A DNA stretch of 64,000 nt from Octopus sinensis (Eukaryota): positions 60,574,001 through 60,638,000 of the forward strand of contig NC_043007.1 of assembly GCF_006345805.1 (NCBI RefSeq), written 5' to 3'. Position 1 is the first letter of the stretch, and each line of letters starts with the position of its first letter. Positions 3,393-61,400 of this stretch are shown here, piece by piece. The position numbers were made by a program, and so were the translations under genes. The notes beneath the pieces are model-generated. The model searched no databases. It saw nothing but the letters and a program-made list of their open reading frames with translations, and was not told the DNA's origin.

Positions 3393-4640
3393 GTTGGACA
3401 AAATAATGGAAACACCTTAAAATTTCAGACAAATTTATTCTGAGGTAGGACCATCTTTGGCAGTAATTACAGCTTGAATTCTACAAGGTATGGACTCGTA
3501 CAAAGTTTGGATTGTTTCCAAAGGAAATTTTGTCCATTCTTCAGCTAAAACAGTCTCCAGTTCTTGTAGTGATGATGGTGGAGGATATCAACTCCTTACT
3601 TGTTTTTCTAAAATGCACTATAAATGTTCAATAATATTGAGATCTGGAGACTGTTGTGGCCAGATAAGATCTTCAACTTCACTAGAATGTTCCTCGTGCC
3701 ATTCAGTAACAACTTTAGCCCTGTGAATTGGTGCATTATCATCCGGAGAGATTGCGTTTCCCTCCGGAAACAGCTCCACAACATTAGGATGAATTTGATC
3801 AATTAAAATGCTTGAATAGTCTTGACTATTAATTCTGCTATGAAGCAAAACCATTGGGCTGGTGGATTTCCAAGATATAGTGCCCCCAGATCATCACTGA
3901 TCCTCCTCCATGTTTAACAGTTAGAAGAAGGCAGTCTAGGTCAAATGCTTCTTTTGGCTGTCTCCACACGTATACTCGGCCAGTGATTGGAAATAAGGTA
4001 AAGGATGACTTGTCCAAGAAAATAACATTCTTCCACTGCTCTAGGTTTTTACTCCACTCTAAATGCTTTGCAACGTTTGTTTTTGAAAGTAGTGGTTTTC
4101 TGATTGCAACCCTCCCATGAAATCTGGCTTTGTGCAGCTCTTGGCGAACATATTTTGTGGAAACTGGGTTCTCAAAGTGGTCATTAAACTCTGCAGTAAT
4201 TTTGGGAGCTGTACTTTTGTGATCCTTTCTAACAATTCGTATAAGAGTCTGATAGTTCCTATCTGAAAGTTTTGGTTTTCTCCCAGAGCTTTGTTTCGAC
4301 GAGGAGGTTTTTCCCTCTATCTCAAAGGCTGTCATTACTTACAAGACAGTACCTCTTGATACACCAAACATTTTGGCTGTTTTTGTTACACTAGCACCTA
4401 CCATACAAGCACCAACAATTTGACCTTTTGAAAGTCCAATAGATCTGTCATTTTAATGAATTTTAATTACCTTTCTTTGATGGTATCTGAAAAGAAACAG
4501 CAATTTTAGCAAAACATATTATGAAGCAATAATAATGAATCAAAAAACATAAAAATAAACAAGCTTTTGACGGTTTTATAGATATTTCAAAATTACGATG
4601 CTTTGATGGTAGGTGTTTCTATTATTTTGTCCAACCCCTG
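3388..4640 (-). mobile_element. Tc1-family (DD34E) DNA transposon, full length, defective
   Basis: ~30-bp TIRs (C/T)AGGGGTTGGACAAAATAAT(G/A)GAAACACCT at 3388-3417 and 4611-4640, flanked by TA. Confidence 0.92.
3435..4451 (-). pseudogene. Tc1 transposase remnant
   Basis: Fragments GQIVGA..GASVTKTA, GRKPKLSDR, FLDKSSF, KHGGGSVMIWG, DDNAPIH and WPQQSPDLNIIEHL, interrupted by stops and frameshifts (ORFs 3838-4335 and 3618-3854). Confidence 0.9.
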
Positions 4641-6582
4641 TATATACACACATATATATGTGAAACCTCTGAAGCTTATGCTATTGGTAGTTACTTGGAC
4701 TTCACGGTCACTTCAGAAATTTCTCTTCATCCTCTTCCACAGGTGTTCTTTATAGGCCCCAAAACTGGCAGATGCTACCCAAAAATGAAACATCAACCAC
4801 TTGGGTTAATTGCTTGTTATTCTATCAGCTTTGTCATCTGTACCGTCAATGAATCTATGTGACCTTTAGCACAAGAATAGTAACCCTACCATAATCATTA
4901 TTATGCATCAGCATGAATATAATCATTTCATCTGTTTGTATATATATATGGGATTACATTTTCTAATATATCCTAATTTAAGAGGGTAGTGTGTTATTTG
5001 AGGAAAACTTGAGCTGGTATCAATCAGGTCATACACCCATGAAGAGGCCTTTCTACTTGGCTCAAAATATAGTTTGTCATGTAAAAACACAATGATGGAA
5101 GGTATTTGAGTCATGATAGTTTCACCTTTTCTATGTCTAGAATCTATGTTGATTAATATAGCCTTTATTTAATAGTATAGCAAGTAATATATTCCTTTTA
5201 CACATTAACTTCTTGACACCTAACGCATGTTCTCTGTCTCTCTCTCTTTCTCTACTATATTCCTATTTAGCCAAGGGGATTTTTAGTTTTAGTAATTACA
5301 TGGCAACCTCACTAATGTTAGTGACATGAAAAATGCACTCAATACATTCTGTAACATGGTTGGTGCCAGGAGGAGCATCCAGCCCTGGAAACCATGCTAA
5401 AGCAGACATTGGAGCTTGGTGTAGTCCTCCAACATGTTGGTTCCTGCTGAATTGTCCAAGTTATGTCAGCAGGGAAGATGGACATTAGATGACAGTGATA
5501 ATTTGTGATGAATTTGTGAGATATTGCCTGTTATTTTCAGCAGGTTAAGCCAAAACTGAATTGTGTGTGCTTACCAAACCCTGACTTGTCTGATGATAAA
5601 AATGTTTGATAATAAAAACAGGGTTTTCCAATTTTTCAATGTGTTCTATTACTTTGTGTAAATATATATATTTCAGATAAATCTAAAACAAGTATAAGAA
5701 AGAAGTAAAGTTGTATAAAAACACAAATTAATTATTTTTTTAATTTGAAATAAGTTCTATTTTTTTTTCACTACCCACTATTTAACATATTTTCTTTGGT
5801 GTACAATAGCAAAATATTTTCCTTTTATTGACAGCAGTGACATAGCATGAGTTGCCAGTACCTGGGGCAAAGCAAGTATTGCTGGGAGGAAAAACTATTT
5901 TCTTATATTTATTATTACCACCTTATTTTTTACTTTTGACATTTTGCATCTCTGTGGCCTTTTCCACACTTCACCTCTGATTAACAGTAAATATTTACTA
6001 TAAATTATGAGGTCATTTGTAGATAGTCAATAGCTTAGTAATAGAACATTGAACTGGTTCATTTCCTCGGTTCATAACAAAACCCCTTCAACATGTTTCA
6101 TGTAGACGGGGTTTTGTTATGTTCTTGAAATTATTACTATTTGAAATTAATGTTATTGATGCTTTTAAACTACAGGATCATATCTTTTACCTGTACATAA
6201 ATTTCTATAGCAATATTCTACCAAAAAGACATTTCAAGCAATAATATTTACAACTTCATTACTGAACCTTATTTAAATACAGCTACCATGCTTGATGTTT
6301 TGGGGAGTTTTTTTTATATTTGTTAATACCTGAATATAAAGGTGACAGAGCAAGAAAGAGCTATTAAATGCCTGACTTATTTATGTACATAGATGTTTAA
6401 GATCTATATTAGCACAAAGTAGAGCAATGTAGTTAATACAAATAGGTCAATTGCTTTTTAGATCTATAAGTTGTATTACTAAGTTAATAAATAAGCCATT
6501 ATTCACACAATAAAAACATTTGTATGACTACCAAATAATATTAAACTAATCTGGCAAATTAATTTTTTTCATTGTTTTTAAG

Positions 6583-8020: not shown

Positions 8021-8200
8021 AGATGTCAAAAGTTGCTTATGCAGATCACAAAGAAATGGTGAATCAACTGACCAAATATATGATTGAGAATGATAAGGAA
8101 TCAAAAACTTCCAAGCAAGAAATAGTTAAAATACAGAGTGCCTATGAAGAAAAGAGTACTGAATGTAAATCTTTGGAGAAAGAGATAGAGGTGTTGAAAG
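8021..8200 (+). CDS. Exon of uncharacterised coiled-coil gene (module copy 3)
   Basis: gaAG acceptor and G|GTGATT donor; 180 nt, phase 1-1: EMSKVAYADHKEMVNQLTKYMIENDKESKTSKQEIVKIQSAYEEKSTECKSLEKEIEVLK. Confidence 0.7.
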
Positions 8201-9319
8201 GTGATTATAATTATGAGATAAATTCTATGAATCTTACTGCCTGCCCTCAAGAATTTTTACCTTTGTTCTTTCCCTGTGAGGAATCTGATTAAGGTTCCTC
8301 TCCATCTTAACTCTTGCACACAATGCACATTTACATGTTTCCACTTTAGTATTTCTACTATCTCTCCAGACTTATCTCTCATTGTGTCTACATTGGCTGA
8401 GGCAGCTCTAAAGTTATTGACGTGATGGGAAGTGTAGACAGGGTAACTGGTATGTTTTCAGCATCTGAAAGGAAGAAGGTTTGTGGGAGTATTTGACAGT
8501 AGACAATGGACTTTTGCATATGTCAAAATATTTCCATTTAAAGAATTGCTATTACCTACAGTTAAGCTATTGGGTTTGGTTCCATTATAGTAGAAGAAAA
8601 AAACCATGCTTTAACTATGAGTGTAATGTTGTATGTAGAATGTGAATCTTAATGTGAGGCTTTGCTATTTTAGACTCTAGACTGTATAAACATGTAAAAT
8701 ATGTTAACATATAGAATGTATAGACATGTATAAGCACTGTCTCTGATGTACAAAATGTTGCTGGTCAAGAGCATTGCCTTACTGAAGCACTTATTTTACC
8801 TGATAAATGGAAACTGTATTCACTTGTATATAATTAGTTTGCCTCTATCTCAGAGTTTACGTTAAAATATGATTTGTGCTGTGTCAAATTGTCAAATAAA
8901 GCCCAATAAAATAATTAACTACAAAAAAATACTGGAATCAGTATGAGCCACTAGAGATTCCATAAGATTGTGCCCTAGGAAGAGAACAGTCCAGTGCCTG
9001 AAACCAGTAGCAGAATAGAAGAATGGTTAACTTTTGTAAAATACTTTTCAGTGCACTTTACTGAGATCTTACTTACTTGTCAGCTACATTATACGAGACA
9101 TATAGATTTGAATTCATTTAATTTCAGTAGTTGATTTTAATGTTTACTCACCATTTGTACATTTTGTATTATGCTTTTTTTTATTATATGTCTTTTTTTT
9201 CCAACATTATATGCATGTGTGTGATTGTATATTGTTGTTGTTGTTGTTGTTGATGATGTTGTTGTTGATGATGTTGTTGTTGTTGTTGTTATTGTTATCA
9301 TTATTATTATTATTTCTAT

Positions 9320-13429: not shown

Positions 13430-13598
13430 CAACAATGCTCTCCTGCTGATACTCCCAGTTTGTCACCAACTGTTTGTGCCAGCTTACATGTTCATTACTT
13501 GGGACACTGTTTGTCATCTGAAATGTTTTATGTTTGAAAAATTGTTCATAAACTAATTTGTTTGTGATGAGAGGCATTTGTAAACTGAGGTTCCACTG
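13430..13598 (-). mobile_element. pogo/Tigger-like DNA transposon end fragment
   Basis: Minus strand starts TA|CAGTGGAACCTCAGTTTAC, a Tigger-type TIR; only one end is present. Confidence 0.55.
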
Positions 13599-13739
13599 TA
13601 TTGTCAAATTACATTAAGTTATTTTGAGTGGATGAGAAGGAGATGGTTATGGTGAATGTCAAGAGATTTTGGGGTTTTTCCCTTTTTTTTCTTCTAAGAT
13701 TATGAAATTTCATACAGAGACTGTGTCATCAATCTAAGG

Positions 13740-15744: not shown

Positions 15745-18667
15745 CTCTCCTCTCATGAAATTTGTGGCATCACACCTGTGTAAGAAACCACTGGCTGCAA
15801 TTCTCTTTACTCCTATATTTTCCTGCATGACATCAACTTAGAGATGTTCAAATTAAACATTAACGACATCAGTTGATCATTTCTTCTAAGTAAGACATGA
15901 AACAAAGAAAAAAAAAAGGTAATTGTCTTCAGATTTCTTGGAGTTTGGAGTGCCAAAAGTTGTCAGAAAACTAGCTTTATTGAATTTCCTCTTAAAGAAA
16001 ATCCAACTCCTACAATGTCACAAAATCACTTTTGTTCTATTTTATTTTCAGTTGGTTGTGGCATATTGTTTACATGTGAAGATGGATCTAACATTTGTAT
16101 CCAAAGTTAATTCATTGAAATTAAACTGAGCTCCTGCCTGTCTTCACTCAAGGTATACTGCATTAATCTCAATACTGGCATTTATGTCAAAATACTTTAC
16201 TGCCACTTTTCTTTCTGTCATTTCATTTGCTTCAAGATTTGGTTTGTTTGTTTTTTTTCGGCATCTTTCCTTTTCTCTTATTCTCTATTTCATTTTTTTA
16301 GAGTTCCCTTTTACTTAACCTATAATTTTCAACTTTTTTTTTCAATACTTAACTCTCACTTCCCTCTAAGTACTTCATTCATTTCTAACTTTTGTGTGTG
16401 TGTGTGTGTCTGTCTGTCTGTCCATCCCCATTCCTCCATCTATCTATCTAACTGTCCATTTGTCAGTGCCTGCATGCAGGCATGGCTATATGGTTAAGAG
16501 GTTCACTTCACAAACATGTGGTTCTAGATTCAATACCACTGCACAGAACCTTAAGCATGTCTACTATAGCCTTAAGTTGACTAATACCTTGTCAATGAAA
16601 TTTGGTAGATGAAAGCTACAGAATCTTATATTCACTTGGTTGATATCCATTTCTTTTTTAATACGAGCATGGGTTTGGATGGGAACATGTCTGAAATAGG
16701 ATTTTATGGCCAGATGCTTTTTCTGCCTCCAACTTTCACCTGTTTTTTCAAGTTAGGTTTTTTTTTTATATTCTATCTGTCTTCAAAAGTGCAAAGCAGC
16801 CTGTCATTTTATCAACCGGGATTGCATATCATTCACTTTTTAATCATGGGACCTCATGTACATATACATACATGTATGTCATTATTTAGTTTTATTTCAA
16901 GATTTCATGTCAATAGAGAAAGAGCCAGTTTCTAACCTAGATCCAAAGCTCTTTCACTGGAATTTCAACATCATTAACAAAGTATTTTTCCATGTATGTT
17001 TGAATATGTGCAATATTTGGAGTCAGTGCATATGCAGATTTGTATGTTTTGTTTTATGTATGTATTCTCATGCATGTGGTTTGCATATCTAGACATGCAC
17101 ATATATACTTAAATGATAAATTTTACAAATGTAGTGATGGTTTGTGTCTGTTGTCTTCAAATCAGCTTTCTCCTTTCTGGTTTTGAGAAGCCTAATTTCT
17201 CAAGATTAGTACTTAAACAGTGTGTTATATATCCCAGTGCCCCTATAATTACAGGTATAAACTTGAATTTGTAATCTGGGTGGAGTTACTGTAGATCTCT
17301 CAATAGTTCAACTTAGATATTTTATTTTTCATTGATTGTAGCTTTATGTTAACATTCACTGGGCAGTTGATTTCTACTACTGTACATAGTTTCTCTTTGT
17401 CACAAGTCACTATGTTGTCAGCTCTATTATGTTTACATTTTATTGTGGTTTTCACTGAGACATATGTATGTATGTATACAGCTGTGGGTATATGTATGTA
17501 TATATGTCTACACACACACACACACACACACACACAAATGCATGTAACTGGCTTCCTACAGTTTCTGTCAACCAAATTCATTCACTAAGCCTTGCTCAGC
17601 CTGGGTATTGAAGGAGACAACTAACCAAAACTTCTTGGTTGTGAAGTGAACTACATAACTACCAGCCATGATTGCCCATGCATAATACATATCACAAGAA
17701 GCAAACTATGATGGGGAAGGAAACTCTGTTTTAAGTAGTGCCTTTCTCCTAAACAAATAATGACATAGAACACTGCTGCAAATCTTCACATCCAAATATC
17801 CCACTTCATGGATTAGTTTGGTATTGACTTTATTGTTATATACCATCGTTAGTGATTGTTTGAAATCTTGTAATTAGGACTGATTGGATATTTTTGATTT
17901 TAATGTTAACAGTTTTTAAACTGTCATTTCAGCAAAAACCTCAACTTGACAGAAATCCCTTGAAAACAAGAAATTTCAGATAGACAACTCTTTGAATTGA
18001 GAATCTTTGAGTGTACTTGATGCTGTGACCTGGGCCACACTTGTGTCTAAGGATTCTAATGCCGATGATTCTAATGCCGATGAATCAGTCAAACCTGATA
18101 CAAAAGTGTTGTTCATTTTTGTCTTGGTTCCTGAAGATTTATTAATCCAGTCAACTCTCTCTCTCTCTCTCTCTGTTGTTTTCTTGGGAATTAATGCTCC
18201 CCAAAACAATTATTTTGTTTTTAAATATAAATAAACTCTATTCAAATTCAGGTATCAGTTTGTCTGGATTTTCATTGAATTTTATTATCATTAATTGCAG
18301 AGAGTAAAGATTGAAAGAGAAGATGAGTAGGTGGAAGGCATGTCTGATATGAAGGTAAACATCAGAAAGATGAAGATGGTGACTGTGGTGTGAATGATGA
18401 AAGAGGACAACAGAAAAAGGGAGAATGAAATACAATCAGGCCTTACCTCGGCGAAGATTAGTTCGGATCTTTCTCAGCTAGCTCGATACGTCTGGTGCCT
18501 TCGTCGTCTCAACAGCAACTCCTCGATCCCACACGTACGTCCTCACTGCCGCTTCCGCTTCCTGCTGCACATGCGCCTTGCAAGCCCTACTTCCGCCCTC
18601 CCCTATCTGTCATCCTCTCACCAACACCACACGCCCCCCTGATCTACAGATCACTGAACCGGCTTTC

Positions 18668-21514
18668 TCACTCGCTCCCCGCTCCCGCACCTGAACTGGT
18701 TTCATAATCAGCCAACCAGGGAGGAGGGTGCCGTTTCCTCTGTGGTCGCAGTGCGACCCTAGGACTTGTTCCTGGTGTGTTGCTGCTAGCCTCGTCATCC
18801 TGTCTACTGGTGTTGTTTTCGTCTTGCCCACTGCTGCTGGTCCCATCCTCTGGGGCATGGACCATCCTCTGTATATCCAAAACGTGGCGTGGCATACCAT
18901 CAACCGAGATGTTATTTTTTGAATTTACAGAGGTTATTGTCCCCTTTCCCCATTGTGATGTACACCGTGCATTTGGGGGTTTTACCCAGACTTCCTCCCC
19001 GACCTGCACGAAGGCATGCTCTTCCTCTGCCCCGGGTCGCATTGATGTAGTACACGGATGCCTCCACTCGTACCTGAATATTGCCCTGTGTGACACCAAC
19101 TCCTCAGCATGTCCTGATCTGGGCGACATATTGTACCAAAACACGGCCTCGATTGGTGAAATTTGACCCCTCTCTGCCATGGCCTTGATGGTACGATGAT
19201 GCCTTTCCACCACCCCATTTCCACTTGGCCGGTATGCCGCCCTGAAGAAGCGGTTGACCTTCCACTCATCAAGCATTTCTTTCAGCACATCCGAGCAAAA
19301 TGCAGTGCCATTGTCCAGAAGCAGTTCATCCACGGGGCCTCGTTCCAGGAATATCTCATTCAACACTTTCACAATTTCCTCTGCGGTCCCCGACTTCATC
19401 TCCCTCCATATGGCCAACTGCCCCGGTCCGCAGTCAACCATTGAGAGGTATGTCCCCTGCCGGTAGTGTGTTATGTCCACCGCCAGTCGTTTCCAGTCCT
19501 GGTCCACTGGAATACTTCCCGCTTCATGCACGACCAGAGCAGGGTCGATGGACTGGCACCTGTCACCACTGCTAACCACTCTCTGCACGCTCTGTCTTGT
19601 TACGTCGGAGTCAAGTTTTCTGGCTAGGAACAATGTCCTGTCCACACCCATGTGATACATGGTGTGCAGTCTTCGCAACTCCGAGTCGCTCAGATGGCAT
19701 ACTGCAGCTACAGCCTGCTTTGCATCCTCTGGCACCTGCAACCAGGCTCGCTTTACCCTGGTCAGGACGTCTGCCCTGTTCTTCTCGGAAGGCACAAAGA
19801 TCACGCTCAGCTTCAGATTGAACTCAGTGGTTAGTTCACGCAGTATTCCCAATCGACGCTTTACCAGCATCTCTGCAGCCCCTTTGGTCCGCACCCTCCG
19901 CTCATCGGTGATGACTGCTGTTGCCCAACCAAGTACAGTGGCCGAATCAGTCCTGATTTCTATGGTGTGCAACCCCCACTTCAAGGCTAGGTTCACCCCA
20001 CTTCAACATGGCATCCAACTCCGCCACGTTGATATGATTGCAGTCATCTGTCTTCCTGAGCCAGGCTGCATCTTCCACCGTGACACCTCCCACTCTAAGA
20101 CAACCCCTATTGCGATGCTACTAGCGTCACACCATACGATCTCGCTCTTTGATTTGGGAACATACCAGCTGCCCCTCACTGGGTCCTCTGCTCCTACTCT
20201 GACCAAGACTTCCTGCATCATGTCGATCGTCCTCTCCCCCACTCTATCATTCCACTTCACTCCTTCGGGTCGTCTCTTGATGAAGCTACATGCTGTTCGG
20301 AGCCAACCTGCAATCGGGTAATGTCCCACCAGCTTCCCACACACAGAGAACAGTTCCCGTCTACTCATGCTGGCGCCCAGCTCAGGGACCTCATTCCCTC
20401 GCCGGAACACCAACGCGCCAGCCTTGTCTCTCCATAGCTTGAGGCCCAGTGCGGCACCTCCCTCCATTGCCTCTGGCGGCTTGGCGATTAGTCCAAAACT
20501 CTTCAGGTGGCCTATGACCTCCGTTGCTGGTATCACGGTTTCATCCACCAGAATGTCATCGATGTATGAATTGGTGGCCCTTTTTACTCTGTCCACCTTC
20601 CCCAGGTGGGCCTTGAGAATTGTTGCCATAATCTTTGGCGCTGAATTCAGCCCGAATCACCACCTGGTCAGACAGTACGTCCGGCCCTTATAGCTGACGA
20701 GCTGGTACTTCCATAATTTCTCAGCCACATGCACCTGTAGGTATGCCGACTTCAAATCAACAATCGTGGAGGCCCCCATCGTCTGCCTCCACTTTCGCAA
20801 GGTGTCTCCGCAGACATCCGTGGCCTCGCCGCCCGTATGACACGACACGTGGTCATTCAGCTCTCGGAAGTCAAGCACTGGCCTGACCTTATGCTTTGTG
20901 GGCTGTATCACTGCCATCAGTGGCAGGACTCCGCTCTCTTCTTTTTCCCAAGGGATCAATATGGCCTCCTTAATCCACCGCTCCACCTCCCCCTCGAACT
21001 CACTTCTGGCATCTCCTTTTTGAGAATGCTGATAGCAGCCCACTTTATTCTTTAACATCAGGGGCTCTCCCTTCCAGTGCCACTTCACTGTCCACCTCTT
21101 GCCATCAAAGACAGCCCGAAAATTCTGGTCTTCAATGGTGTGTGCCGCATCCTTTTCCTCATGGTTGTCACCGGTGCACGGTCTCGCCCTACACAGTTTC
21201 CCTGCTAACCCAAATGTTACACCAGCCTCGTTAACGGTGACACCTCCCAAGCAGGTGATTGCATCCATCCCCATCACCACGTCAATCTCGTCCACCAAGT
21301 GACCAACCACAATCACTCGCAATGTCAGCTGTAGTGCCTGCACTACAATCTGCGCATCTGTAACCCCTTCGCAGTGTACTTCTCTTCTGTCGACAGCCCT
21401 AACACTGCTTCCTCCACTCCACGTCTCTGCCACTTCTGTAGTCATCAGGGTCGTTGTACAGCCCGTGTCCACCAGGGCTCGCGACATCTTCCCCTCCACC
21501 AGAATGTCGATCAC
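18668..21514 (-). pseudogene. Gypsy pol (protease, RT, RNase H, integrase) with frameshifts
   Basis: ALVDTGCT (protease); LDFRELN, DLKSAYLQ and YIDDILV (RT); WCDASS and RTDSATV (RNase H); HMGVDRT, VDITHY, DNGTAF and NGVVERHHRTIK (integrase). ORFs 20657-21514, 20003-20629 and 18668-19996. Confidence 0.95.
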
Positions 21515-21537
21515 AGGTAGCGATGATAAACACGCCG

Positions 21538-22282
21538 CTACTGATCCAAAGGGACAACTACCGGCGCACTAGTCTCCCGCAGTCCGTTTCCCCACAGACT
21601 CTCGCTGGCTACATGCCCCGGCTCTCGACACCGGTAGCAAATCACCTCAGGCTTGGGCGACACGCAGTCACGCACCATGTGTGGACCTTGGCACCAGAAA
21701 CACTGTCCTTTGAACGGTCGCACACGTTCTTTCTTTAGCCCCTCTCCGCTGCTCCTAGGTGGGCCACTTTTCGATGTTGCAGTCGCTGCTACCGACGTCA
21801 TCCTGCTGCACGAAACTAGTACACGTGCCCGAGATATGATGTCAGCCATCGGCATCGAATGCATGTTCGGAGCTTCTGTAGCTCGACCGACATGATGTCG
21901 GGAAAACCGGTCACGAACTCCAACCTAACCGTCCGTTCCAGCGACTCTCCCTCGTAATCCGCCAATTTAGCCAGTCTTCTAAGCTCATTGGCAAACACGT
22001 CCACCTGTTGCCCAGTCCATCTCATTCTACCTCGAACATTCCCTCCGCAAAGGCCTCCATCAACCGGATTTCTACTTTCTCCGCGCTAAGTTGGTCCGTC
22101 TCCTTCATCTCTAAATATAACGCCAACGCCGGGCCATCCAAGTACAGCAGCATGAAGCTCGCCAGGTCACCTATACCATGGAGCTTCGCCACCAACTTCA
22201 CTCTCTTCAACCAAGCGACCACATCTGTGTCGCCGCAAAACGGTGTTATAAGTTCGTGTGAAACCCGAGCACTCTGCATCAT
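21538..22282 (-). pseudogene. Gypsy gag with two zinc knuckles, frameshifted
   Basis: ORFs 22022-22282, 21816-22025 and 21538-21864; CFWCQGPHMVRDC and CYRCREPGHVAS knuckles. Confidence 0.9.
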
Positions 22283-22311
22283 TTTTCATTTATAAAACCG
22301 ATTGTGTATAT

Positions 22312-22323
22312 GCCGAAATAGCT
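22312..22323 (-). promoter_or_regulatory. Putative primer-binding site complementary to tRNA-Phe(GAA) nt 1-12
   Basis: Plus strand GCCGAAATAGCT directly abuts the 5' LTR and equals the 5' end of vertebrate/insect tRNA-Phe (GCCGAAATAGCTCAG...). No TGG-type PBS is present. Confidence 0.7.
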
Positions 22324-23019
22324 TGTGGTGTGAACGATGAAAGAGGACAACAGAAAAAGGGAGAATGAAATACAATCAGGCCTTGCCTCGGCAAAGATTA
22401 GTTCGGATCTTTCTCGGCTAGCTCGATATGTCTGGTGCCTTCATCGTCTCAACAACAACTCCTCGATCCCACACGTGCGTCCTCACTGCCGCTTCCGCTT
22501 CCTGCCGCGCATGCGCCCTGCAAGCCCTACTTCCGCCCTCCCCTATCTGTCATCCTCTCACCAACACCACAGTGACCAATGGTAAATCATGTGGGTAAAG
22601 TTAGCATGTGTAGTTACAGGAATAATGTTGGAGAAAACACTATTACATGTATAATACGTATTGGGTGGGTTCATTGAAAATGTATTGGTGTGAGAGAGTT
22701 TTTAACTGATGTGATAACTACATTTACATATAAGGTATATGGACTCAGTGATAGTAACTAGAATGAGATAGATGTGGAAGAAGTTTTAGGAACTGGGTAT
22801 ATACTAATGGGGAAGGAAATGTCACTTAATTTGAAGAGAAGGGCTATGTTGCATATGTGAGAGGAGCTGTGATATATAGGAATAAATAATAATAATGAAA
22901 TTATTGTATACAGTGCTCAGGTGCACCACAACTTGTCAGAAAGTGCATATAAAGTACATGCAGTAATGTAGAAATGTCTGGAAAGTGAACATGCTTGTGT
23001 GTGTATGGAGGGGAGAAAA

Positions 23020-27514: not shown

Positions 27515-28247
27515 GAAGAGGTGACGACAAAATGTTCACACAAAAAATGGAAGTATTTATGTTCCTAAAACTTTTGCCCCAACTGTAGGTTTGTAAGTTT
27601 TAACTTATTTTGAGGGAAATTCAATTTACTCACAGAAAATAGTAGATCTTCCAGTAATTACAGTTGTTTATCAGTAGTCCTGAAGAGGTGACGACAAAAT
27701 GTTCACACAAAAAATGGAAATATTTATGTTCCTAAAACTTTTGCCCCAAACTGTAGGTTTGTAAGTTTTAACTTATTTTGAGGGAAATTCAATTTACTCA
27801 CAGAAAATAGTAGATCTTCCAGTAATTACAGTTGTTTATCAGTAGTCCTGAAGAGGTGACGACAAAATGTTCACACAAAAAATGGAAATATTTATGTTCC
27901 TAAAACTTTTGCCCCAAACTGTAGGTTTGTAAGTTTTAACTTATTTTGAGGGAAATTCAATTTACTCACAGAAAATAGTAGATCTTCCAGTAATTACAGT
28001 TGTTTATCAGTAGTCCTGAAGAGGTGACGACAAAATGTTCACACAAAAAATGGAAATATTTATGTTCCTAAAACTTTTGCCCCAAACTGTAGGTTTGTAA
28101 GTTTTAACTTATTTTGAGGGAAATTCAATTTACTCACAGAAAATAGTAGATCTTCCAGTAATTACAGTTGTTTATCAGTAGTCCTGAAGAGGTGACGACA
28201 AAATGTTCACACAAAAAATGGAAATATTTATGTTCCTAAAACTTTTG
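27515..28247. repeat. 168-bp tandem array (4 near-identical units plus a partial unit)
   Basis: GAAGAGGTGACG unit starts at 27515, 27682, 27850, 28018 and 28186. Confidence 0.97.
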
Positions 28248-34113: not shown

Positions 34114-34425
<312 letters not shown>

Positions 34426-38246: not shown

Positions 38247-39994
38247 GTGAGTAGACTTTATGATTATGCTTATTTTAATATCTGTTATTGAAAAGATGCC
38301 ATAGCAGTTAAAATGCTATACTCATGTTATCATCATCAGTTAATGTCCATAACCCATGCTAGCATGGAAAGCGGACGTTAAATGATGATGATGATGATGA
38401 TTCCATGTTGGCATGGGTTGACAAGTTCCAATAGTCCAAGGACTGCATCCTGCTCCAGTGTTTGTTTTGGCATGGTTTATATGGCTGGATGCCCTTCCTA
38501 ACACCAACCACTTTACAGCATATACTGGATGTTTTTTTTTTTTTTTATCTTTTTGTGCCACCAGCACTAGTGAGGTGCTGCAGCTTGCAGGGCAGATCGG
38601 TTTTGTTGGATGAGTTATTTTATAGCAGGATGCCTCTTCTGTTAACTTCTCAACTGTGAAGAAACCAAACCAGTTGTAAATCTAACAAGCTGGACAATCA
38701 TGGCCATACATGTTTTACATGAATACCTGGAAATGAACAACCCTGCTTACATGACAATGGTGCTTGTTTATAGTTAGCACAAGCTGTCAAGACAAGGAGA
38801 CATGACATACACACACATGCTAAGCTTCTTTCAGTCTCCACCTAGCAAATCCACTCACAAGGCTTTGGTCAGCCTGGGGCTATGGTGGAAAGCTTTTACC
38901 CAAGGTGCTGTGCAGTTCACAGTCAGTGAACATTAAATAGATGCAACTTGACTTTCTCTTCATACACAAAAACATGGAGATTGTCTTGACATGTTTCATG
39001 GTTTGTTGACAGCTTATTCCTCTGCTCACAAAGAGGTCTTATCACAAATAGCTTTTTTAAATTAAACACAAATTATAACTTAGTTGTAAGGATTTAATTT
39101 TCATACTAAATAATTAATATTTACACACAACATTGCATGGTTTAGAAAACCTAAGATACAATTAAAGTATTTAAACTGCAGTTTTTAAGCTGTTATTCTT
39201 TTCATACACATCAAAATGTAGGCATGTGTTCCAATGGATTTCACAGTTTGTTTACAATTCATCAGAGAAGTATTCACCTCATTTCTTTTCTGACAAAGGG
39301 ATCTTTTCACAAATAGCTATTTAAATTAAGCATACCATTTTTATGCTCATGATATGTTATAGACATTCTTGCAAAGCTAGTTTTTTTTTTACAATTACAT
39401 ATCTGTTTTGGTATCTAGCCCTAAAAACTATGCCAAAACAAACACTGAAGCCTGGTGCAGATTTCTGCCTAGCCAGCTCCTGTCAGACTATCCATGTGTG
39501 ACACCTTGAGTGAGTGCCTTCTACTATAGCTTCAGGCCAATGAAATCCTTTTGAGTGGATTTGGTTGACAGAAACTAAAGGAGGCCTGTCATGTGTGTGT
39601 GTGTGTGTATATATCATCATCATCATCATCGTTTAACGTCCGTTTTCCATGCCAGCATGGGTTGGATGGTCCGACTGGGTTCTGGGAAGCCAGGAGGCTG
39701 CGCCAGGCTCCAGTCTGATCTGGCAGTGTTTCTACAGCTGGATGCCCTTCCTAACGCCAACCACTTCATGAGTGTAGTGGGTGCTTTTTACATGCCACTG
39801 GCACAGGGGCTAGAGGAGGCTGGCAAACAGCTACAATTGGTTGGTGATTTTTATGTGTCACCAACACGGATGCCAGTCAGGTGGCGCTGGCATCAGCCAC
39901 ATTCGGATGGTGCTTTTTACGTGCCACCGGTACAGGTATCTTAACTCTAATTTCCATTTGATTTTTATTTTCATGTTGGTGTTGACGTACTTGA

Positions 39995-40068
<74 letters not shown>

Positions 40069-43000
40069 CTTTTTATCACTACCACTACTGCTTGGTGTAT
40101 TTACATCCCTGTAACTTAATGGTTCAGAAAAATAGATTGATAGAATAAGTTCTGGGCTTTATAAAAATAAGTATTGAGGCGATACATTCGACTAAAAATT
40201 CTTCAAAGTGCTTCAGGTAAATGGCCCTGCTCAATATGTAGAAAAGGTGTAGGTAGAAACTCCATAAGATGCACCCAGTGTAAGCTTTGGACACATAAAA
40301 GGTGCAGCAAAATCAGAGGAAGGTTAAGAGGGGAAACTAGCTTTTGTATGTGGAAGATGCACAGGTACAATAAATGCTGAAAATGTGCAGAAAATTGACT
40401 CCATCAACTGCCAGCAGGGCAAACTAGAGGTAGTAGATAGCTTCCGTTATCTAGGTGACCAAGTTAGTAGTGGAAGTAGATGCTCTAAGAGTGTAGCTGT
40501 AAGAATAAGATTAGGCTGGGCAAATTTCAGAGAGCTCCTAAACCTGCTGGCAACAAAGGGCCTCTCTTTCAGAGTGAAAGACAAATTATTTGATGTCTGT
40601 GTACAATCAGCTATACTGCTTGGCAGTGAAACATGGGCTGACAACCAAGGACATGCGTAGGCTTGAAAGAAATGAAGCTGGTATGCTTTGCTGGATGTGC
40701 AAAGTCAGTGTGCATGTTTGACATAGCATAAGCATCTTGAGAGAAAAGTTAGACATAAGAGGCATCAGATGTGATGTGCAAGAGAGATGACTGGTCATGT
40801 GATGCGTATGGACGAGGTCAGCTGTGTAAAGAAGTGTCTATCTCTATGGAGGGAACCTGTGGTAGAGGTAGACCCAGGAAGACCTGGAACGAGGTGGTGA
40901 AGCACTATCTTCAAACTTTGAGCTTCACAGAGGCAATGACTAATGACCAAGACTTTTGGTAAGGTGCTGTACTTGAGAGGACCCGTCAAGCCAAATGTAC
41001 CCGTGCTGGTAGCATGTAAAGAACACCTTCCAAGCGTTGGGCCTCATGGAGGCAAAGTGGTCGGGTTCCTTTCAAGTGGTAGGTTTCACAGAGGCAAAGT
41101 GGCTGAGTTCCTTTCAAGCGGTGGGCCTCACGGAGGCAAAGTGGCTGAGTTCCTTTCGAGTGTTGGGTCTTATGGAGGCAGTGACAGAGACCTTTGGCAT
41201 TGCATTGTGCATGAGAAAACCCTTCAAGCCAAGCAAAATCAGTCAAGGCAAATACCGGTGTCGCACAAATTGGCACACATGCTGGTGGCATGTAAAACCA
41301 CCCCGGTGTCATGTAAATTGGCACTCGTGCTGGTGGCATGTAAAAGCACCCTGGTGTCACACAAATGGCACTGTACTGGTGGCATGTAAAAGCACCCATT
41401 ACACTCTTGGAGTGGTTGGCATTAGGAAGGGCATCCAACCATAGAAAACCATGCCAAATATAGACTGCAGCTTTCCAGCATGCCAACCCAGTGAAATGAT
41501 GATGATGATGAATATGTCTCCTTAAATGACACTAGCTTACTAGGAGATCTCCTTGGATTGGATATTAAATCTCTAAATTATACTGTCATTTGTCTTACAC
41601 GATTTTGAGGTATTGCAGAGTTTAGATATATTCATCATCATCATCATCATCATTTAGCGTCCGTTTTCCATGCTAGCATGGGTTGGACAGTTCAACTGGG
41701 GTCTGTGAAGCTGGAAGGCTTCATCAGGCCCAGTCAGATCTGGCAGTGTTTCTACGGCTGGATGCCCTTCCTAACGCCAACCACTCCGTGAGTGTAGTGG
41801 GTACTTTTTACGTGCCACCCGCACAGGTGCCAGACAGGTGCCGCACGGGGGCCAGGCGAGGCTGGCAACGGACACGAACAGATGGTGCTTTTACATGCCA
41901 CCAACACGGGGGCCAGACAGAGTTGGCAAACGGCCACGAAACGGATGGTGCTTTTACGTGTCACCGGCACGGAGGCCAGGTGAGGCTGGCATCGGACACA
42001 AACGGATGGTGCTTTTACGTGCCACCGACACGGGGGGCCAGACAGAGCTGGCAAATGGACACGAACGGATGGTGCTTTTACGTGCCACCGACACGGGGGC
42101 CAGACAGAGCTGGCAAATGCCCACAAATGGATGGTGCTTTTACGTGTCACCTGCACGGGGGCCAGGCGAGGCTGGCAACGGACACGAACGGATGGTGCTT
42201 TTACGTGCCACCGACACGGAGGCTAGACGGGGCGGCGCCGGCAACGATCACGATCGGATGGTTCACTTAACCACAGCTGCAATTCCCACTGATGTTGATC
42301 GACCTCAATTTGGTTCTGCTTTCTGATATATGAATTGATTTGGTTTGATTTTGACTGTTCTCACTGGTCTTGCCGGGTTTTCTCACGCACAGCATACTTC
42401 CAAAGGTCTCGGTCTCTGGTCATTTCCTTGGTGAGACCTAAAGTTCGAAGGTCGTGCTTCACCACCTCGACCTCAATATTATTAAAAGAATTTAATCTCA
42501 TGTACATCTTTAGAAATTAACTTTCACTCTTCCTTTCCAGCTGAACAAATTAAACCCTCACCTTGTCATAGAATCACTCTATGATTTGAGAGAAGGGGAG
42601 CAGTTTGTTGCTTTATTGAACAAGATGTAAGTACTTTTTATTAATATAGTTTTTCATTTGTTTATTTATATAAACAGATCTATCATCATACAAAAAAAAA
42701 TATTTATAATAAATTGTATTTTTTAATATTTTTCCTTATGTTAAATTTAACTGCTTCATTATTACTAATTACTTAGCCATGAAACAAGAGTGGTACTTGT
42801 CAGGCAAACAAACTGAGGCAGAGTTATGTACCTTGCACAGAAATACTTGAAGCACTTTGTTCTTAAGCAGTCTAGCGTGCCTGTCTGTAATTAGATATTA
42901 CAGAGGAGGAACAAGTTGCCACTAAGTCATTGTTGTATTTAAAAGTTATAGTATTATTGACTTGTAGCACTAAGTTCAACTCACCATGCAGAACTGGAGA

Positions 43001-55400: not shown

Positions 55401-58400
55401 TTTGACAAGCTTTAGATATTCCATATGAACCCTTTCATTGGATATGAATACATTCATCTATACACAAAGTGTTCATTACTCTTCTTATCAGACATTATCA
55501 TCATCATCATCATCATCATTTAGCGTCCGTTTTCCATGCTAGCATGGGTTGGACGGTTCTACTGGGGTCTGTGAAGCCAGAAGGCTTCATCAGGCCCAGT
55601 CAAATCTGGCAGTGTTTCTACGGCTGGATGCCCTTCCTAACGCCAACCACTCCGTGAGTGTAGTGGGTGCTTTTTACGTGCCACCCGCACTGGTGCCAGA
55701 CAGAGCTGGCAAACGGCCACGAACGGATGGTGCTTTTTATGTGCCACCGGCACGAGGGCCAGGCGAGGCTATAAATAATATATACAAGCATATATATGCA
55801 CTGTAAAGTGTGTCGTGTAACCAAAAGTCCAGACTCAGTAGTGCATTTCCTCGCTCTCCTCCTGTATCCAGTGCAGTTAGATGAGGGCCATCAAACTTCA
55901 GGATAAATTTCTATGAGAATATGAATCATGTAACAATATTACTAAAATACAGAATGCATATTTGATGTTTTAAGCTTTATAAAACATACACCTAATTTGC
56001 TTTCTCACCACTTCATTCCATGTCTTCCTGGGTCTACTTGTTCCACAGGTACCCTCCACAATTAGATATTAGCACTTCTTTAAGCAGCTGTCCTCATCCA
56101 TCCACCCACATATATACATATTCTCTCATTATTTTGTGTTCACTTTTATTTTTCCTATTTCTATTTCTTTGGGTTTTTTTTTCTTCTCTATTTTCTGGAT
56201 TCTTTAGATGACAAGATTCGAGAACTGAACAACCAAATTCGAGATTTGAAGAAGTTGCAAGACCAGTTGGATGAATATGACAACATTAAGAATCAATACG
56301 ACCAATTAGTTGCTGATGCTGATAAGTATGTGTAGTTAGATCATTTGATAGATTGCTGTTTTATTATTATTATTATTGAGTGAAGGAGCAATGCATGCTA
56401 TCAAAGTGACACTGGGGTGCAAATATACAAAGCCCAATATACCTTTCAGAACTACCCGTCTGATAAGGTTACACCAGGCACATGCATCACAACCACATGT
56501 GTATGACATGATTACCTTATGTCAAGATAAACAGCACATGACCTTCAGATCAAGTAGCCCATCCTGCTCAAAAGGTCCCTAAATAAAGTTTGTGTAAGAA
56601 TGATGAACAAAACACCCATGTTTCCAGAGGTGAATTATTCAAATCCCAAAGAATTCCTTTCAACACATGTCTATGATGCTCCCCCACTGCTTGTGATCTG
56701 AGATGCACATATTGTCAGCCACTAAGGGACATACTCAACTGGTTATGGTCAAACAACTGACAATCAAATCTGTGGTATTGAACAATATTTTCTGTAGTCC
56801 ATTATTATTATTAAGGTGGCAAGTTGGCAGAATCATTACAATACCAAAATGCTTAGTGGGATTTCATCTATCTTTATGTTCTGAGTTAAAATGCCACTGA
56901 GGTTGACTTAGCCTTTCATTTTTTTTCTTTTTTTTTTGAGGGGTGGGGAATAAAATAAATACCAGTTGAACACTGGGGTTGATGTAATTGATCTAACCCC
57001 TAAATTTGAAACCATTATTGTTAATTTTATCTATATCTACATCTAGCACACTATCTGGTATCTTATTGATTCTTTACAGATCACTTGTCTGTTATAAAAC
57101 TTCAAGTGTTCAATTTTGTTTTTATCTGCTAGAATTCCGAGTTCATCATCAGCATTTAGTGTCCATTTTCCATTCTGGCATGAGTTGGACAGTTTGACTG
57201 GAGCTGGTCAGCCAAGGAACTGTCCAGATTCCAATTGTCTGTTGCGTGTTTTCTATGGCTGGATGCCCGTCCTAATGCCAACTACTTTACAATGTATGCT
57301 GGGTGCTTTTTACATGCCACCAGCACAGGTGCATTTATTCTGTAATTTTTGTGAGATATTGTATTTCAGTTATTTTGATATGTTGTCTTACTGTCAACAT
57401 TTCCTTCATTGAAAAGCAAGGTAAACTGATACACATAAGATCAAGTATTCTATTTTAAGACACAAAGAAAAACAAATATTTGCTTGCGTGTGTGTGTGTG
57501 CACAAATCAAATCATGTTCACTGTTTTTTTTATGTCCACTCTTGCACTTTTGCATGTGTTGTTGCTTATTATTTATGGAGTCTTAGGTGGTAAGCTGGCA
57601 GAATTGTTAGTGTGGTGAGCAAAATGCTTAACAGCATTTTGTCAGTCACTACATTCTGAGTTCATATTCTGCCGAGGTCAACTTATCCTTTCGGGGCCAA
57701 TGAATTAAGTCCCAGTGAAACACTGGGATTGATGTAATTAACTAGTTCCCTCCGCACAAAACTGCAGGCCTTGTGCCTTTAGTAGAAAGGATTATTGTTT
57801 GTGGAATCTGATGCTGACCATTTTTGTCTTCATTTCTGAATCCTTGATGATCGTACATCTTACTTGTTAATGTACAGCTCCAGTTGTAAGTAGGACATGT
57901 AAATGTTTAGTTGGAAGTTGCAGATCTAATTCTGAGTATGTCTCTCTTTTTTTGATAGTGACCTGTGTATTTCTCCACTATATCTCCACTCTCCAACAAT
58001 GAGACTGCCAAAGGGAATGGCAAACAATAATGTCTTATATTTAGGAAGAACTAAAGTTACTTCCCTTCAAAATTCTTTTCATCATTTCTTTGCTTCCTAC
58101 TATGGTATTACTGAGCATAGAATATCATACAAGGAAGATAAGAGTTAGACATATACAGTTCATATCTAACCTCTCTCAAGTGCTTCTGGTGTTGGTTCAA
58201 ATGAGGATTTCTCTGTGAGTAATCCTATATTACTGGGTAACTGAAAGGATCTTCAGGGAACACTAATCTCTAAAGATTGTATGTGCCACTTGTATGGGGT
58301 TTCTATTTTACATCCATGCAGGAAAGTGGAAACAGAGTGTTTGGTATACAAGACTTCTGGTATCGAAGTTGATCTTGTGAATTAGAAATATTCTATTTTT

Positions 58401-61400
58401 GTGCTTTTCAAAGGATACAGAGAAATGAACTTGTAAACAGTGCCTCACAAATAAGAAGATACAGACAGAACATAGTGCAAGTTGTTGTATATTTGTTTAT
58501 ATTTATTCTATTTTTCTTTCTAGGGTGAAAAGTCAGCATGATGAACTTAAATTATTAAAATTGGAAAACACTTCATTAAAGAATGAAAATGCTGAAGTGT
58601 ATGAAGAACTGAAGAAACTGAAGGAAGTAGTAAGTAAAAATTGGTAAAAAAATATCTAATGGTTAGTTGAGTTGATGTTTTGATTATTAACTATGTTCCA
58701 CATTGGTTACTTTTTAGTTAGCACATGATATTGTATTTATAAGGTGGGATAAATTAATTACAAGATAATTGGCAATTAATTTTGCTAATTCTTAGCTAAG
58801 TGATGTGGAACAAGTAGAGTTCATACCCAAGGATAATTTTAATTAAAGTTGCATCCTTAAGCAAAGTGAATAAGACAGTCAACATTGAGATACCTGTTGA
58901 CTTAGCCTATTTATATGTATCAATATTTGTAATTATTTATATAAATGCCTCACTGTTTAGAAAATGGTTGTGCTGTCACTGTGTCACCTCACATCTTTCA
59001 GAAATCACAACTGAAGGTGGCTCAGTTAGACCAAGTTAAGAACTTGAAGGAGCTACAATTAGAACAGAGGAAAAGTTCTAATCTCCAATTGCACTTGGAT
59101 CACAAGCAGAAAATCTTGGATGAGACAATTCAGAGCAAGAATTTTACAGAAGACAATTTGGCAAAACTGAGAGAAATGTACGAAGTATTGAAGAGAGATC
59201 ATGAAGAAACACTTGCATTTCAGTCAGGTGATTATAAATTTTATTTCTAAATGATCTAAGAGGGGACAGACAGACAGTCAAAAGAAACTGCCACAAACTC
59301 CACCTAAACACACAATTCTGTGAAATGGCTTTATGCAAAATTAAATTTGGTTTGGCAGTGTGGTAAGAAGTTTGCTTCCCAACCACATGGTTTTGGGTTC
59401 AGTCCCACTGCATGGTACCTTGGGCAAGTGTCTTCTACTATAACCTCAGGCTGCCCAAAGCCTTGTGAGTGGATTTGGTTGGCAGAAACTGAAAAAAGCT
59501 CATCATGTGTGTGTGTGTGTGCGTGTGTGTTCACCCACAACAGGTGTTAGTGTGTTTACATCCCTGTAGCTTAGTGGTTCTGCCAAAGAGACTGATAGAA
59601 TAAGTACTAAGCTTGAAAACGAAATAATAAGTCTTGGGTTTGATTTGTTCAAGTAAAACCATTCAGTCTGGGCACAGTCAAATAACTGAAATGAGTAAAA
59701 GGTAAAAGATAAATCCCTGAAAGTAGATTTATATCTACCATTGGGTCAGTGATTGAAAATGTTATATAACTCCATAAAGACTGTTCAATTGGTAAAATAC
59801 TCATTCACATAATTACCAAATTTGGTAGGCAGAAACTGAAAGAAACCTGTTGTGTTTGAGCTCAAAGAAACGTAGGAGAATGATTGCAGAAATATGAAAA
59901 AATAACAGTGAAGAATAATCATAATCCAAATCTCTTCATATATTCATCAAATAATACTGATTGTTTAATAATTACTGGATTATTATAGTAAAACTGTCCA
60001 GAACAAGATATCTGCAAATAATCAATAAAACAATTTGTTCTTATTTAGAATAAAAATATTTAATCATTTCATAATTTTAGCTTTTACTTGTTTCAGTCAT
60101 TAGATTGCGGCCAAATGACTCGACTCCAGTATCTTTTTTCTTTAAAGCCTGGTACTTCATCTGTCAGTCTCTTTTGCCAAACCGTTAAGTTATGGGGATG
60201 TAAACACACCAACATCAGTTGTCAAGTGGTAATAAGGAACAGACACACACGATAGGCTTCTTTCAGTTTCCTTCTACCAAATCCTCTCACAAAGCTTTGG
60301 TCAGCCTGAGGCTATAGTAGAAGATACTTGCCCAAGGTGCTGCACAGTGAGACTGAACCCAGAACCATGTGGTTAGGAAGCCAGCTTCTTACCACACCAT
60401 CACGCCTACAACTTGATAGTATCTTGGTGCACAGAAAGCAAGAAGTTTGTGGAGTAATGTAGATGATGGCTGTTAGTTAATAAGCTTTTTTTTTTTCTTT
60501 CAGAAAATCAACCAGCTGGAGAAAATATGAGTGTTGTAACAGACTATTTAATGACTGAATTGAAGACAGAACTGGACGATATCAAGACAACATGGATTGC
60601 TCCAGATATTCATGAGCAGTTAAAAATTGATCTCTCGAAACTCACATCTGAACGAGCCATCTTAGAAGTAAGATACTTTCTGAATGCGTTTGTTGTCGGA
60701 AGTATGTATACAGTTATATAGCTTCAGGTCTACCACAATCAGGCAGACATATGTCTGCTATTGAGAAACAATCTTTCTATGATGTTTCAATATGTCCCGC
60801 CTTTTTTAAGACTGTAGGATCTATCTGCTATTTTCTGTAGGTTAAGCTACCAAATAGAAAGCTTCCTTGTTGGCTCATATATAGTTGTATTAATCTGTAG
60901 CATGAACTTTGTTTAGATGGTGTTAACTTTTTCAAATCAACAGTTGAAAGCAGTAGCTGCTTAGAATGCAAGGATTGATATTCTACGAATTACATTACTC
61001 TACTGGTAGAAGACTGTAAGTATCTGATAACTTTCCAGATGCCCAGTTTTCAAGGAGGCTTGACCCAGGTTTGCAACTCCATCAAATATATGAGTAACTA
61101 TGAAACAAACTTAGCAAAAGGCAACTAAACTACACTTAGCATTTAAGAATTTCTGAAGTTGCTACATCATCAGGGATAACATCTCAAGTGTCTCTGCAGA
61201 TTGATTGTTGGGAGCAAGCACTTGTATCTGACATAGCAAGCACTTGCTCTTGGCACAAGAAACAAAAGAGCTTGTGTTTCAATTGAGTCAGATGTAACAA
61301 AGTATATTTGGGTTTAGGTGCAGGTGTGGCTATATGGTTAAAAAGTTTACTTTGGAACCTCGTGGTTTCAGGTTCAGTCCCACTGCATGATACCTTGGGC

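Follow-up and report, generated by a model that had tools for sequence, protein, structure and literature searches.

A compact LTR retrotransposon of Octopus sinensis and its relatives with a primer-binding site that probably pairs with the 5' end of host tRNAs

The LTR retrotransposon in the window

The stretch analysed in the present study, 64 kb of Octopus sinensis NC_043007.1 and hereafter called the window, carries a confirmed LTR retrotransposon of 4188 bp on the minus strand (18384-22571). Its LTRs, at 22324-22571 (5' LTR, minus strand) and 18384-18631 (3' LTR, minus strand), are 248 nt each and 96% identical, and run TGTGGTG...CACCACA. They are bordered by a target-site duplication, the 5-mer GTGAC, which is found identically at 22572-22576 on the 5' LTR side and at 18379-18383 on the 3' LTR side. 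The polypurine tract AGATCAGGGGGGCG (18632-18645, minus strand) stands directly 5' of the 3' LTR, and the same motif also precedes the 3' LTR in the related loci L001, L004, L005, L050 and L092. Hence the general attributes of LTR retrotransposons are all present: direct LTRs of TG...CA form, a target-site duplication, a polypurine tract before the 3' LTR and gag-pol between the LTRs.

The gag region (21538-22282, minus strand; PF00098 match) is decayed into three ORF pieces in three frames (22282-22022, 22025-21816 and 21864-21538, minus strand), the last of which holds a CCHC zinc knuckle. The pol region follows in three pieces on the same strand. The first, at 20657-21514 (minus strand), encodes the aspartic protease (DTG) and the N-terminal part of the reverse transcriptase (RT), with a weak gag-asp_proteas match; a second octopus locus, L002, is 52-81% identical to this piece by tblastn. 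The C-terminal part of the RT (YIDD) and the connection/tether region, DUF7047, lie at 20003-20629 (minus strand; PF23088, E = 4e-23) in the same frame as the neighbouring pol pieces, with in-frame stops between them. RNase H and integrase (IN) occupy 18668-19996 (minus strand), with an rve match and retroviral integrases as the best PDB sequence matches. Since the coding ORFs between the LTRs are all on the minus strand, the orientation of the element and the position of its primer-binding site (PBS) are correct. The window copy is dead, because the gag pieces lie in three frames and the single frame of pol is split by stops, and this agrees with the 4% divergence of its LTRs.

The domain order PR-RT-DUF7047-RNase H-IN, with a C-terminal integrase and with DUF7047 between the RT and an RVT_3/RNase_H-type domain, is that of Ty3/gypsy elements and retroviruses, and the element has no env-sized ORF. 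By sequence, the integrase is nearest to retroviral integrases, with that of MMTV as the best profile match (E = 8.5e-19). PDB sequence and profile searches gave matches limited to integrases and a Ddi1-type protease, and Pfam RVT_1 did not match the intact pol of the Argonauta relative at E < 0.01. An AlphaFold (AF2) model of the RT-RNase H-IN protein of Argonauta (P0005; mean pLDDT 73.7) best matched retroviral RT p66 (connection and RNase H) and foamy PR-RT over ~570 columns, in a PDB that is dominated by retroviral RTs. This layout resembles that of the Odin retrotransposons, which may be related: they lack env beside gag-pol and place a connection/tether between RT and RNase H (PMC9040795). 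They have been found in sea anemones only and are described as a sister group to retroviruses with dual RNase H (the tether and an acquired RNase H) and no env, in a paper that is silent on PBS and tRNA (PMC9040795). The present family differs from them in its size of ~4-4.5 kb and its very short leaders.

Elsewhere in the window, tandem arrays lie at 27515-28247, 62647-63094 and 41844-42233; the units listed are a 168-bp unit in 4.4 copies of 99% identity, a 32-bp unit in 14 copies and a GC-rich 62/186-bp unit. The dispersed repeats D4, D6 and D8 (39608-39876, 41629-41896 and 55495-55762) are 83-95% identical and lie beside the GC-rich array. A further repeat, D10, at 16495-16575, 34135-34215, 59364-59444 and 61339-61419, contains the B-box-like motif GGTTC(C/T)GGGTTCAGTCCCACTG and is probably the tRNA-related head of a SINE; neither ARAGORN nor Rfam gave a call at its copies.

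The 12-nucleotide block beside the 5' LTR

Directly inside the 5' LTR, at 22312-22323 on the minus strand, lies the candidate primer-binding site, AGCTATTTCGGC. It is the reverse complement of GCCGAAATAGCT, which is the plus-strand reading of these positions. The junction on the element strand reads ...CACACCACA / AGCTATTTCGGC / ATATAC, without any spacer after the terminal CA of the LTR and without TGG, and the gag ATG begins 29 nt downstream of the PBS. Re-reading of this junction bore out the coordinates, orientation and sequence given in the preliminary description, as well as its claim of zero spacer and no TGG. In the 64 kb of the window there is a single exact copy of the 12-mer, against ~0.008 expected from 4^-12 and a much smaller expectation for any one predetermined position. 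It complements nt 1-12 of metazoan tRNA-Phe(GAA) at every base. The preliminary description had claimed such a match to the 5' end of Drosophila tRNA-Phe, and a published Drosophila northern 'tRNA Phe GAA 5' probe' indeed ends in 12 nt identical to the 12-mer of the window (PMC7038984). The predicted RNA spanning U5, PBS and leader folded no better than shuffled sequences (z = +1.5), Rfam matched no family in the window and four loci, and ARAGORN called no tRNA gene in the window or in any retroelement locus.

A search with the integrase ORF found hundreds of relatives with 40-70% identity. The named hosts are Octopus sinensis, Argonauta hians, Aplysia, a barnacle, decapods, an amphipod, a mantis shrimp, a sea spider and a copepod; very many further relatives lie on anonymous contigs of ~3.5-4.7 kb, a length at which the contigs of the family cluster. 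A search of IMG/VR found no relatives of pol. For the comparison of junctions, 11 loci were taken by exact protein look-up and 42 JGI metagenome loci by an RT-RNase H-IN profile, a selection that is blind to the PBS.

Among the named genomes, the 12-mer of the window recurs in four loci. In the second octopus locus (L002; ...cacaccaca / AGCTATTTCGGC) the body of the LTR is unrelated to that of the window element. The Argonauta hians element (L004; ...caaataaca / AGCTATTTCGGC) has 100% identical LTRs, the target-site duplication TCAGT, an intact gag and a pol of 1039 aa. The same block follows the LTR in Aplysia californica (L005; ...gtaacaaca / AGCTATTTCGGC) and in the barnacle Amphibalanus amphitrite (L052; ...ttcgctaca / AGCTATTTCGGC), where the LTRs are 99% identical and the duplication is GTGCC. 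The copepod Caligus rogercresseyi (L092; ...gaactaca / AGCTATCACGGC) has 132-nt, 100% identical LTRs, and the 12-mer of the sea spider Nymphon striatum (L051) is identical to that of Caligus. Thus young copies also carry the 12-mer, with LTR pairs that are 100% (Argonauta, Caligus) or 99% (barnacle) identical. Both LTRs are present in L004, L050, L052 and L092. In addition, a metagenome family fixes the LTR boundary independently, because in L009 the 3' LTR ends ...aatcaca and host DNA follows, and in L010-12 AGCTATCCCGGC comes after that same LTR end.

The Argonauta element, which is otherwise intact, has a 71-bp tandem array (L004, 6128-6553) that begins where the 5' LTR ends, spans the leader and reaches into the gag ORF. 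In Aplysia, the end repeat (L005, 3163-3400 / 8107-8344) extends ~240 nt upstream of the LTR start and covers the end of pol and the polypurine tract, which suggests a tandem or recombinant arrangement, and the same locus has a 768-bp internal duplication (3925-4992). The element in L050, on a 639-kb metagenome contig, is split at 3900-5000 by a ~1.1 kb satellite with a period of ~248 bp; its flanking ORFs gave no indication of the host, and homologues of its pol carried neither nematode names nor other telling ones. Short-read contigs of L007, L011, L012, L014, L016, L022, L032, L041 and L048 are circularly permuted (pol-LTR-PBS-gag), an arrangement that collapsed LTRs, tandem copies or one-LTR circles would be expected to produce. 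P0014 and P0055, two proteins of this family of eukaryotic retroelements, have been deposited as 'MAG: ... Bacteroidota bacterium', which likely reflects eukaryotic contamination of bacterial bins.

We aligned 34 junctions from octopus, Argonauta, Aplysia, barnacle, copepod, sea spider and metagenomes on the LTR end and calculated the information content of each column. The upstream columns carry 0-0.6 bit, except for the last three LTR bases (ACA) with 1.6-1.8. The 12 PBS columns have, in order, 2.0, 2.0, 2.0, 2.0, 1.8, 1.5, 1.1, 0.1, 1.5, 2.0, 1.6 and 2.0 bits, and from the 13th base onward the values fall to 0-0.5 bit. Conservation across the 34 junctions therefore covers exactly 12 positions and the terminal ACA of the LTR, with background on either side. 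The preliminary description had named a TGG-type or unrelated sequence in other copies as grounds for refutation; instead, a 12-mer of the same form was found at the same place in 34/34 junctions, and TGG in none of them, so that canonical priming by the 3' end of a tRNA was rejected. The CA before the 12-mer is absent at four junctions, where GA (L008), TA (L019) and CACT (L048) were read and L027 is uncertain.

Numbered as in the tRNA, the block is constant at nt 1-3 (GCC) and nt 8-12 (UAGCU), and the variation is confined to nt 4-7, apart from L001, whose 12-mer implies C at the normally invariant U8. Written in the sense of the primer, the variants are GCCGAAAUAGCU (11 junctions and 2 decayed copies), GCCGUGAUAGCU (7 tabulated junctions and Caligus, L092), GCCGCGAUAGCU (7 junctions), GCCGGGAUAGCU (4), GCCGAGGUAGCU (2), GCCUCGAUAGCU (1) and GCCUAGACAGCU (1). 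Besides GAAA, nt 4-7 read GTGA, GCGA, GGGA, GAGG or, in L050, TCGA. A crude UPGMA on pol identities scatters these variants over the family, with GUGA in at least 4 places and GAAA in at least 5. The 12-mer thus varies between related elements, while unrelated ones have arrived at the same small set of sequences, which argues for an external tRNA as the template of the block.

Self-priming of the Tf1/sushi type, in which the element's own transcript, through its beginning in the 5' LTR, would pair with the 12-mer and be cut to a primer by RNase H, would not drive unrelated LTRs to converge on tRNA 5' sequences. The preliminary description had itself raised pairing with the element's own 5' end, and the window LTR does hold GCCGAGAAAGAT, which forms 10/12 pairs with the PBS if G:U is counted. 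However, 10/12 was equalled in 47-52% of shuffles of the window LTR, and this candidate is not conserved in L002, L004 and L005. Across 31 elements the best LTR complementarity averaged 9.29/12 against 9.45 in shuffled LTRs, and one element only reached P = 0.05. Complementarity being at the level of shuffles, self-priming was rejected and we give it hardly any credence.

The block adjoins both the LTR end and the start codon of gag, as a cis signal for packaging, translation start context or integrase/att recognition might do; its likeness to tRNA would then be incidental, and priming would occur elsewhere or without a nucleic-acid primer. The gag start was found in 32 junctions and lies 0-33 nt past the 12-mer in 29 of them, so that no room is left for another PBS. 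Moreover, the block sits where every LTR element has its PBS, its variation follows positions 4-7 of the tRNA acceptor stem, and two exact tRNA 5' ends (Phe and, as described below, Lys) are found at one position, with a chance of ~6e-8 per specified 12-mer. A non-priming signal is thus very unlikely. At L022 (3607), L030 (224) and L041 (1384) the gag ATG follows directly after the 12-mer, and the leader consists of the PBS alone.

The tRNAs complementary to the block

By sequence comparison, the PBS 12-mer complements nt 1-12 of metazoan tRNA-Phe in the elements of the window, octopus, Argonauta, Aplysia and barnacle. The start of the host tRNA-Phe fits the 12-mer indirectly, through the Drosophila probe and through tRNA-Phe(GAA)-derived copies in Argonauta. 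In 18 kb of Argonauta hians DNA at L004 we found five such pseudogene or SINE copies (3766-3853, 13575-13662, 17782-17857, 17979-18066 and 18129-18216). Their 5' ends read GCCGAAA(T/C)AGCTCA or one-base variants of it, and two of the copies keep the CTGAAGA anticodon loop.

A second tRNA is indicated by L026, which carries AGCTAGCCGGGC, the complement of nt 1-12 of tRNA-Lys(CUU) (primer sense GCCCGGCUAGCU); in agreement with this, a '5' half tRF-Lys(CUU)' probe for Triops ends ...CTGAGCTAGCCGGGC (PMC4501094). This tRNA-Lys(CUU)-type clade would extend the preliminary description, which had dealt with tRNA-Phe. The copepod and the sea spider carry the variant GCCGTGATAGCT, while from barnacle, molluscs and Drosophila one would expect tRNA-Phe to begin with GCCGAAATAGCT. 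The GTGA variant may reflect a different tRNA-Phe in those two hosts, or another tRNA as primer; we know of no metazoan tRNA with this 5' end. Among tRNA genes called by ARAGORN in IMG/VR viral contigs, those for tRNA-Phe(GAA) also differ from the metazoan sequence at nt 4-7 (L072, L086), for example GCCTAGATAGCT, which is one base off the primer of L001, and GCCCAAGTAGCT. Furthermore, GUGA, GCGA and GGGA are each the 5' end of called IMG/VR tRNA genes (Thr, Phe, Ile), including one tRNA-Phe(GAA) each; these genes are viral or prokaryote-type and not host genes, and are uninformative on the hosts.

The perfect 12-bp duplexes are stable, with calculated energies of -18.7 to -25.5 kcal/mol, and the metazoan Phe primer would lose 4.5-8.7 kcal/mol on a variant PBS. 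Complementarity to tRNA-Phe of at least 7 nt that is common to five elements is limited to nt 1-12, and extra tRNA-Phe contacts of the Ty1/Ty3/HIV type were not conserved in LTR or leader. Priming by a half tRNA as in copia and Ty5 was likewise rejected, since the 12-mers start at tRNA nt 1 and the sole conserved tRNA-Phe complementarity is nt 1-12. A third primer type is possible in L027 (2720-2775), where CGCTACCGAGGC, 20 nt before gag at a putative LTR end and preceded by AAA rather than CA, complements GCCTCGGTAGCG, a 12-mer that presumably resembles elongator tRNA-Met.

The tRNA-Phe-derived copies in Argonauta, with their GCCGAAA(T/C)AGCTCA start, together with the abundance of 5' tRNA fragments in animals (e.g. 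PMC4501094), raise the question whether another RNA of the same sequence is the primer, either one transcribed from a SINE or pseudogene of tRNA-Phe origin or a preformed 12-nt host 5' tRNA fragment. This would alter the source of the primer only, and not the pairing. The same design in barnacle, Aplysia, copepod and many metagenomes, and also with tRNA-Lys, points to a universal class of RNA and not to SINEs of particular lineages. The 5' fragments known to date, at 14-35 nt, exceed the 12-mer in length, and their 3' part would protrude as an unpaired flap. We consider such a primer unlikely, and favour the mature tRNA as its source.

Proposed priming from the tRNA 5' end

Taken together, we believe that the 12-mer is a PBS for the first 12 nt of a cytoplasmic tRNA, with a cut at nt 12/13 giving the predicted primer, and we assign this reading a probability of about 0.75. 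It builds on the complementarity, the exact extent of 12 nt, the position flush with U5, and the conservation and switching across the family, all of which are directly established. The primers would be tRNA-Phe(GAA) in the window and tRNA-Lys(CUU), or other tRNAs with ...UAGCU at nt 8-12, in relatives. The interpretation of tRNA 5'-end priming offered in the preliminary description is thereby supported on grounds of sequence. Somewhat less firmly, though still with fair confidence, we propose that a widespread, compact, retrovirus-like LTR lineage of aquatic and soil animals primes from nt 1-12 of its hosts' tRNAs (among them Phe and Lys) after a cut at nt 12/13 has released them.

In the proposed mechanism, the acceptor stem would be unwound with the assistance of nucleocapsid, and nt 1-12 of the tRNA would anneal to the PBS. 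The pairing ends at nt 12 because the last base of the LTR, A, faces C13 of the tRNA; a 3'-OH at U12 would hence be needed, which calls for a break between nt 12 and nt 13 of the tRNA, within the 5' strand of its D stem. To our knowledge, cleavage within the D stem at nt 12 has no precedent. By analogy with Tf1 and Tj1, the cutter would most likely be the element's own RNase H, acting where the RNA:RNA duplex ends; the use of a preformed 5' tRNA fragment from the host is less likely than such a cut. The 3'-OH of U12 would then prime minus-strand strong-stop DNA, with the A of the terminal CA of the LTR as the first templated base. Plus-strand strong-stop synthesis would copy the 12 RNA bases and run off the natural 5' end of the tRNA, and this proposed run-off would account for the sharp end of conservation at tRNA nt 1 without the need for a blocking modified base. 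In retroviruses, half of the progeny receive the copied primer sequence; in Ty1 and Ty3 it is not passed on (PMC7472051). If progeny of the present family could inherit it, this would also account for rapid switching of the PBS between hosts.

As in the canonical priming of retroviruses, Ty1 and Ty3/gypsy elements by the 3' end of a tRNA, a host tRNA would pair with a PBS directly 3' of U5; the LTR, polypurine tract and target-site duplication anatomy and the order PR-RT-RNase H-IN are also shared with canonical LTR elements. Endogenous retroviruses likewise switch their PBS between tRNAs (PMC7472051), as the present family appears to do between Phe and Lys-CUU. However, the canonical PBS corresponds to the 3' 8-18 nt of the tRNA ending in CCA, while here it corresponds to nt 1-12 without TGG, and the 3'-OH must be made inside the tRNA. 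Canonical plus-strand strong-stop DNA ends at a modified base, and here it would end at the tRNA 5' end.

The PBS of copia, Ty5 and 1731 is complementary to initiator tRNA-Met in its anticodon stem-loop region (~nt 25-39), with a primer of ~39 nt. Kikuchi et al. in 1986 and Ke et al. in 1999 reportedly described this priming by the 5' half of tRNA-iMet, cut in the anticodon loop. The use of a 5' tRNA portion from internal cleavage, and a PBS without TGG, would be common to those elements and the present ones. In contrast, the present family would use nt 1-12 of elongator tRNAs and a D-stem cut, and it does not belong to Ty1/copia, since IN follows RT-RNase H.

The self-primer of Tf1 is 11 nt long, and the 12 nt predicted here would form a similarly short duplex from an RNA 5' terminus. 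In Tf1 and Tj1, the 5' segment of the mRNA is released by RNase H as a self-primer (PMC4600332 and the Levin papers of 1995-1998 cited therein). A need for an RNase H cut at the end of an RNA:RNA duplex is presumed for both these Tf1/Tj1/sushi elements and the present family. The 5' terminus would come from a host tRNA here and comes from the own mRNA there, and the LTR complementarity is absent here.

Textbook accounts give three modes of minus-strand priming for LTR elements. The preliminary description had stated that no case of 5'-terminal tRNA priming was known to it, and we likewise found no PBS described as complementing the 5' end of a tRNA in the searchable literature, in which older subscription papers and Repbase are thinly covered. 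With the 12-mers as queries, the matches were confined to northern probes for these two tRNAs, Phe and Lys.

If the proposed reading is true, the tRNA 3' end, the tRNA-iMet half and self-priming would be joined by a fourth mode of priming, which hundreds of element lineages would employ. It would also form a bridge between tRNA priming and self-priming of the Tf1 type, as a plausible evolutionary intermediate, and would offer a natural system for the cleavage of an RNA:RNA duplex on a host tRNA by RNase H. The PBS finders LTRdigest, LTR_FINDER and LTR_retriever search for tRNA 3' ends, and as far as they seek 3' ends only, this family would be missed or mis-scored. In addition, 5' tRNA fragments would join the 3' fragments as candidate regulators of retroelements. 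The PBS would track the tRNA pool of the host, and its variants may mark host range and horizontal transfer of the family among marine invertebrates.
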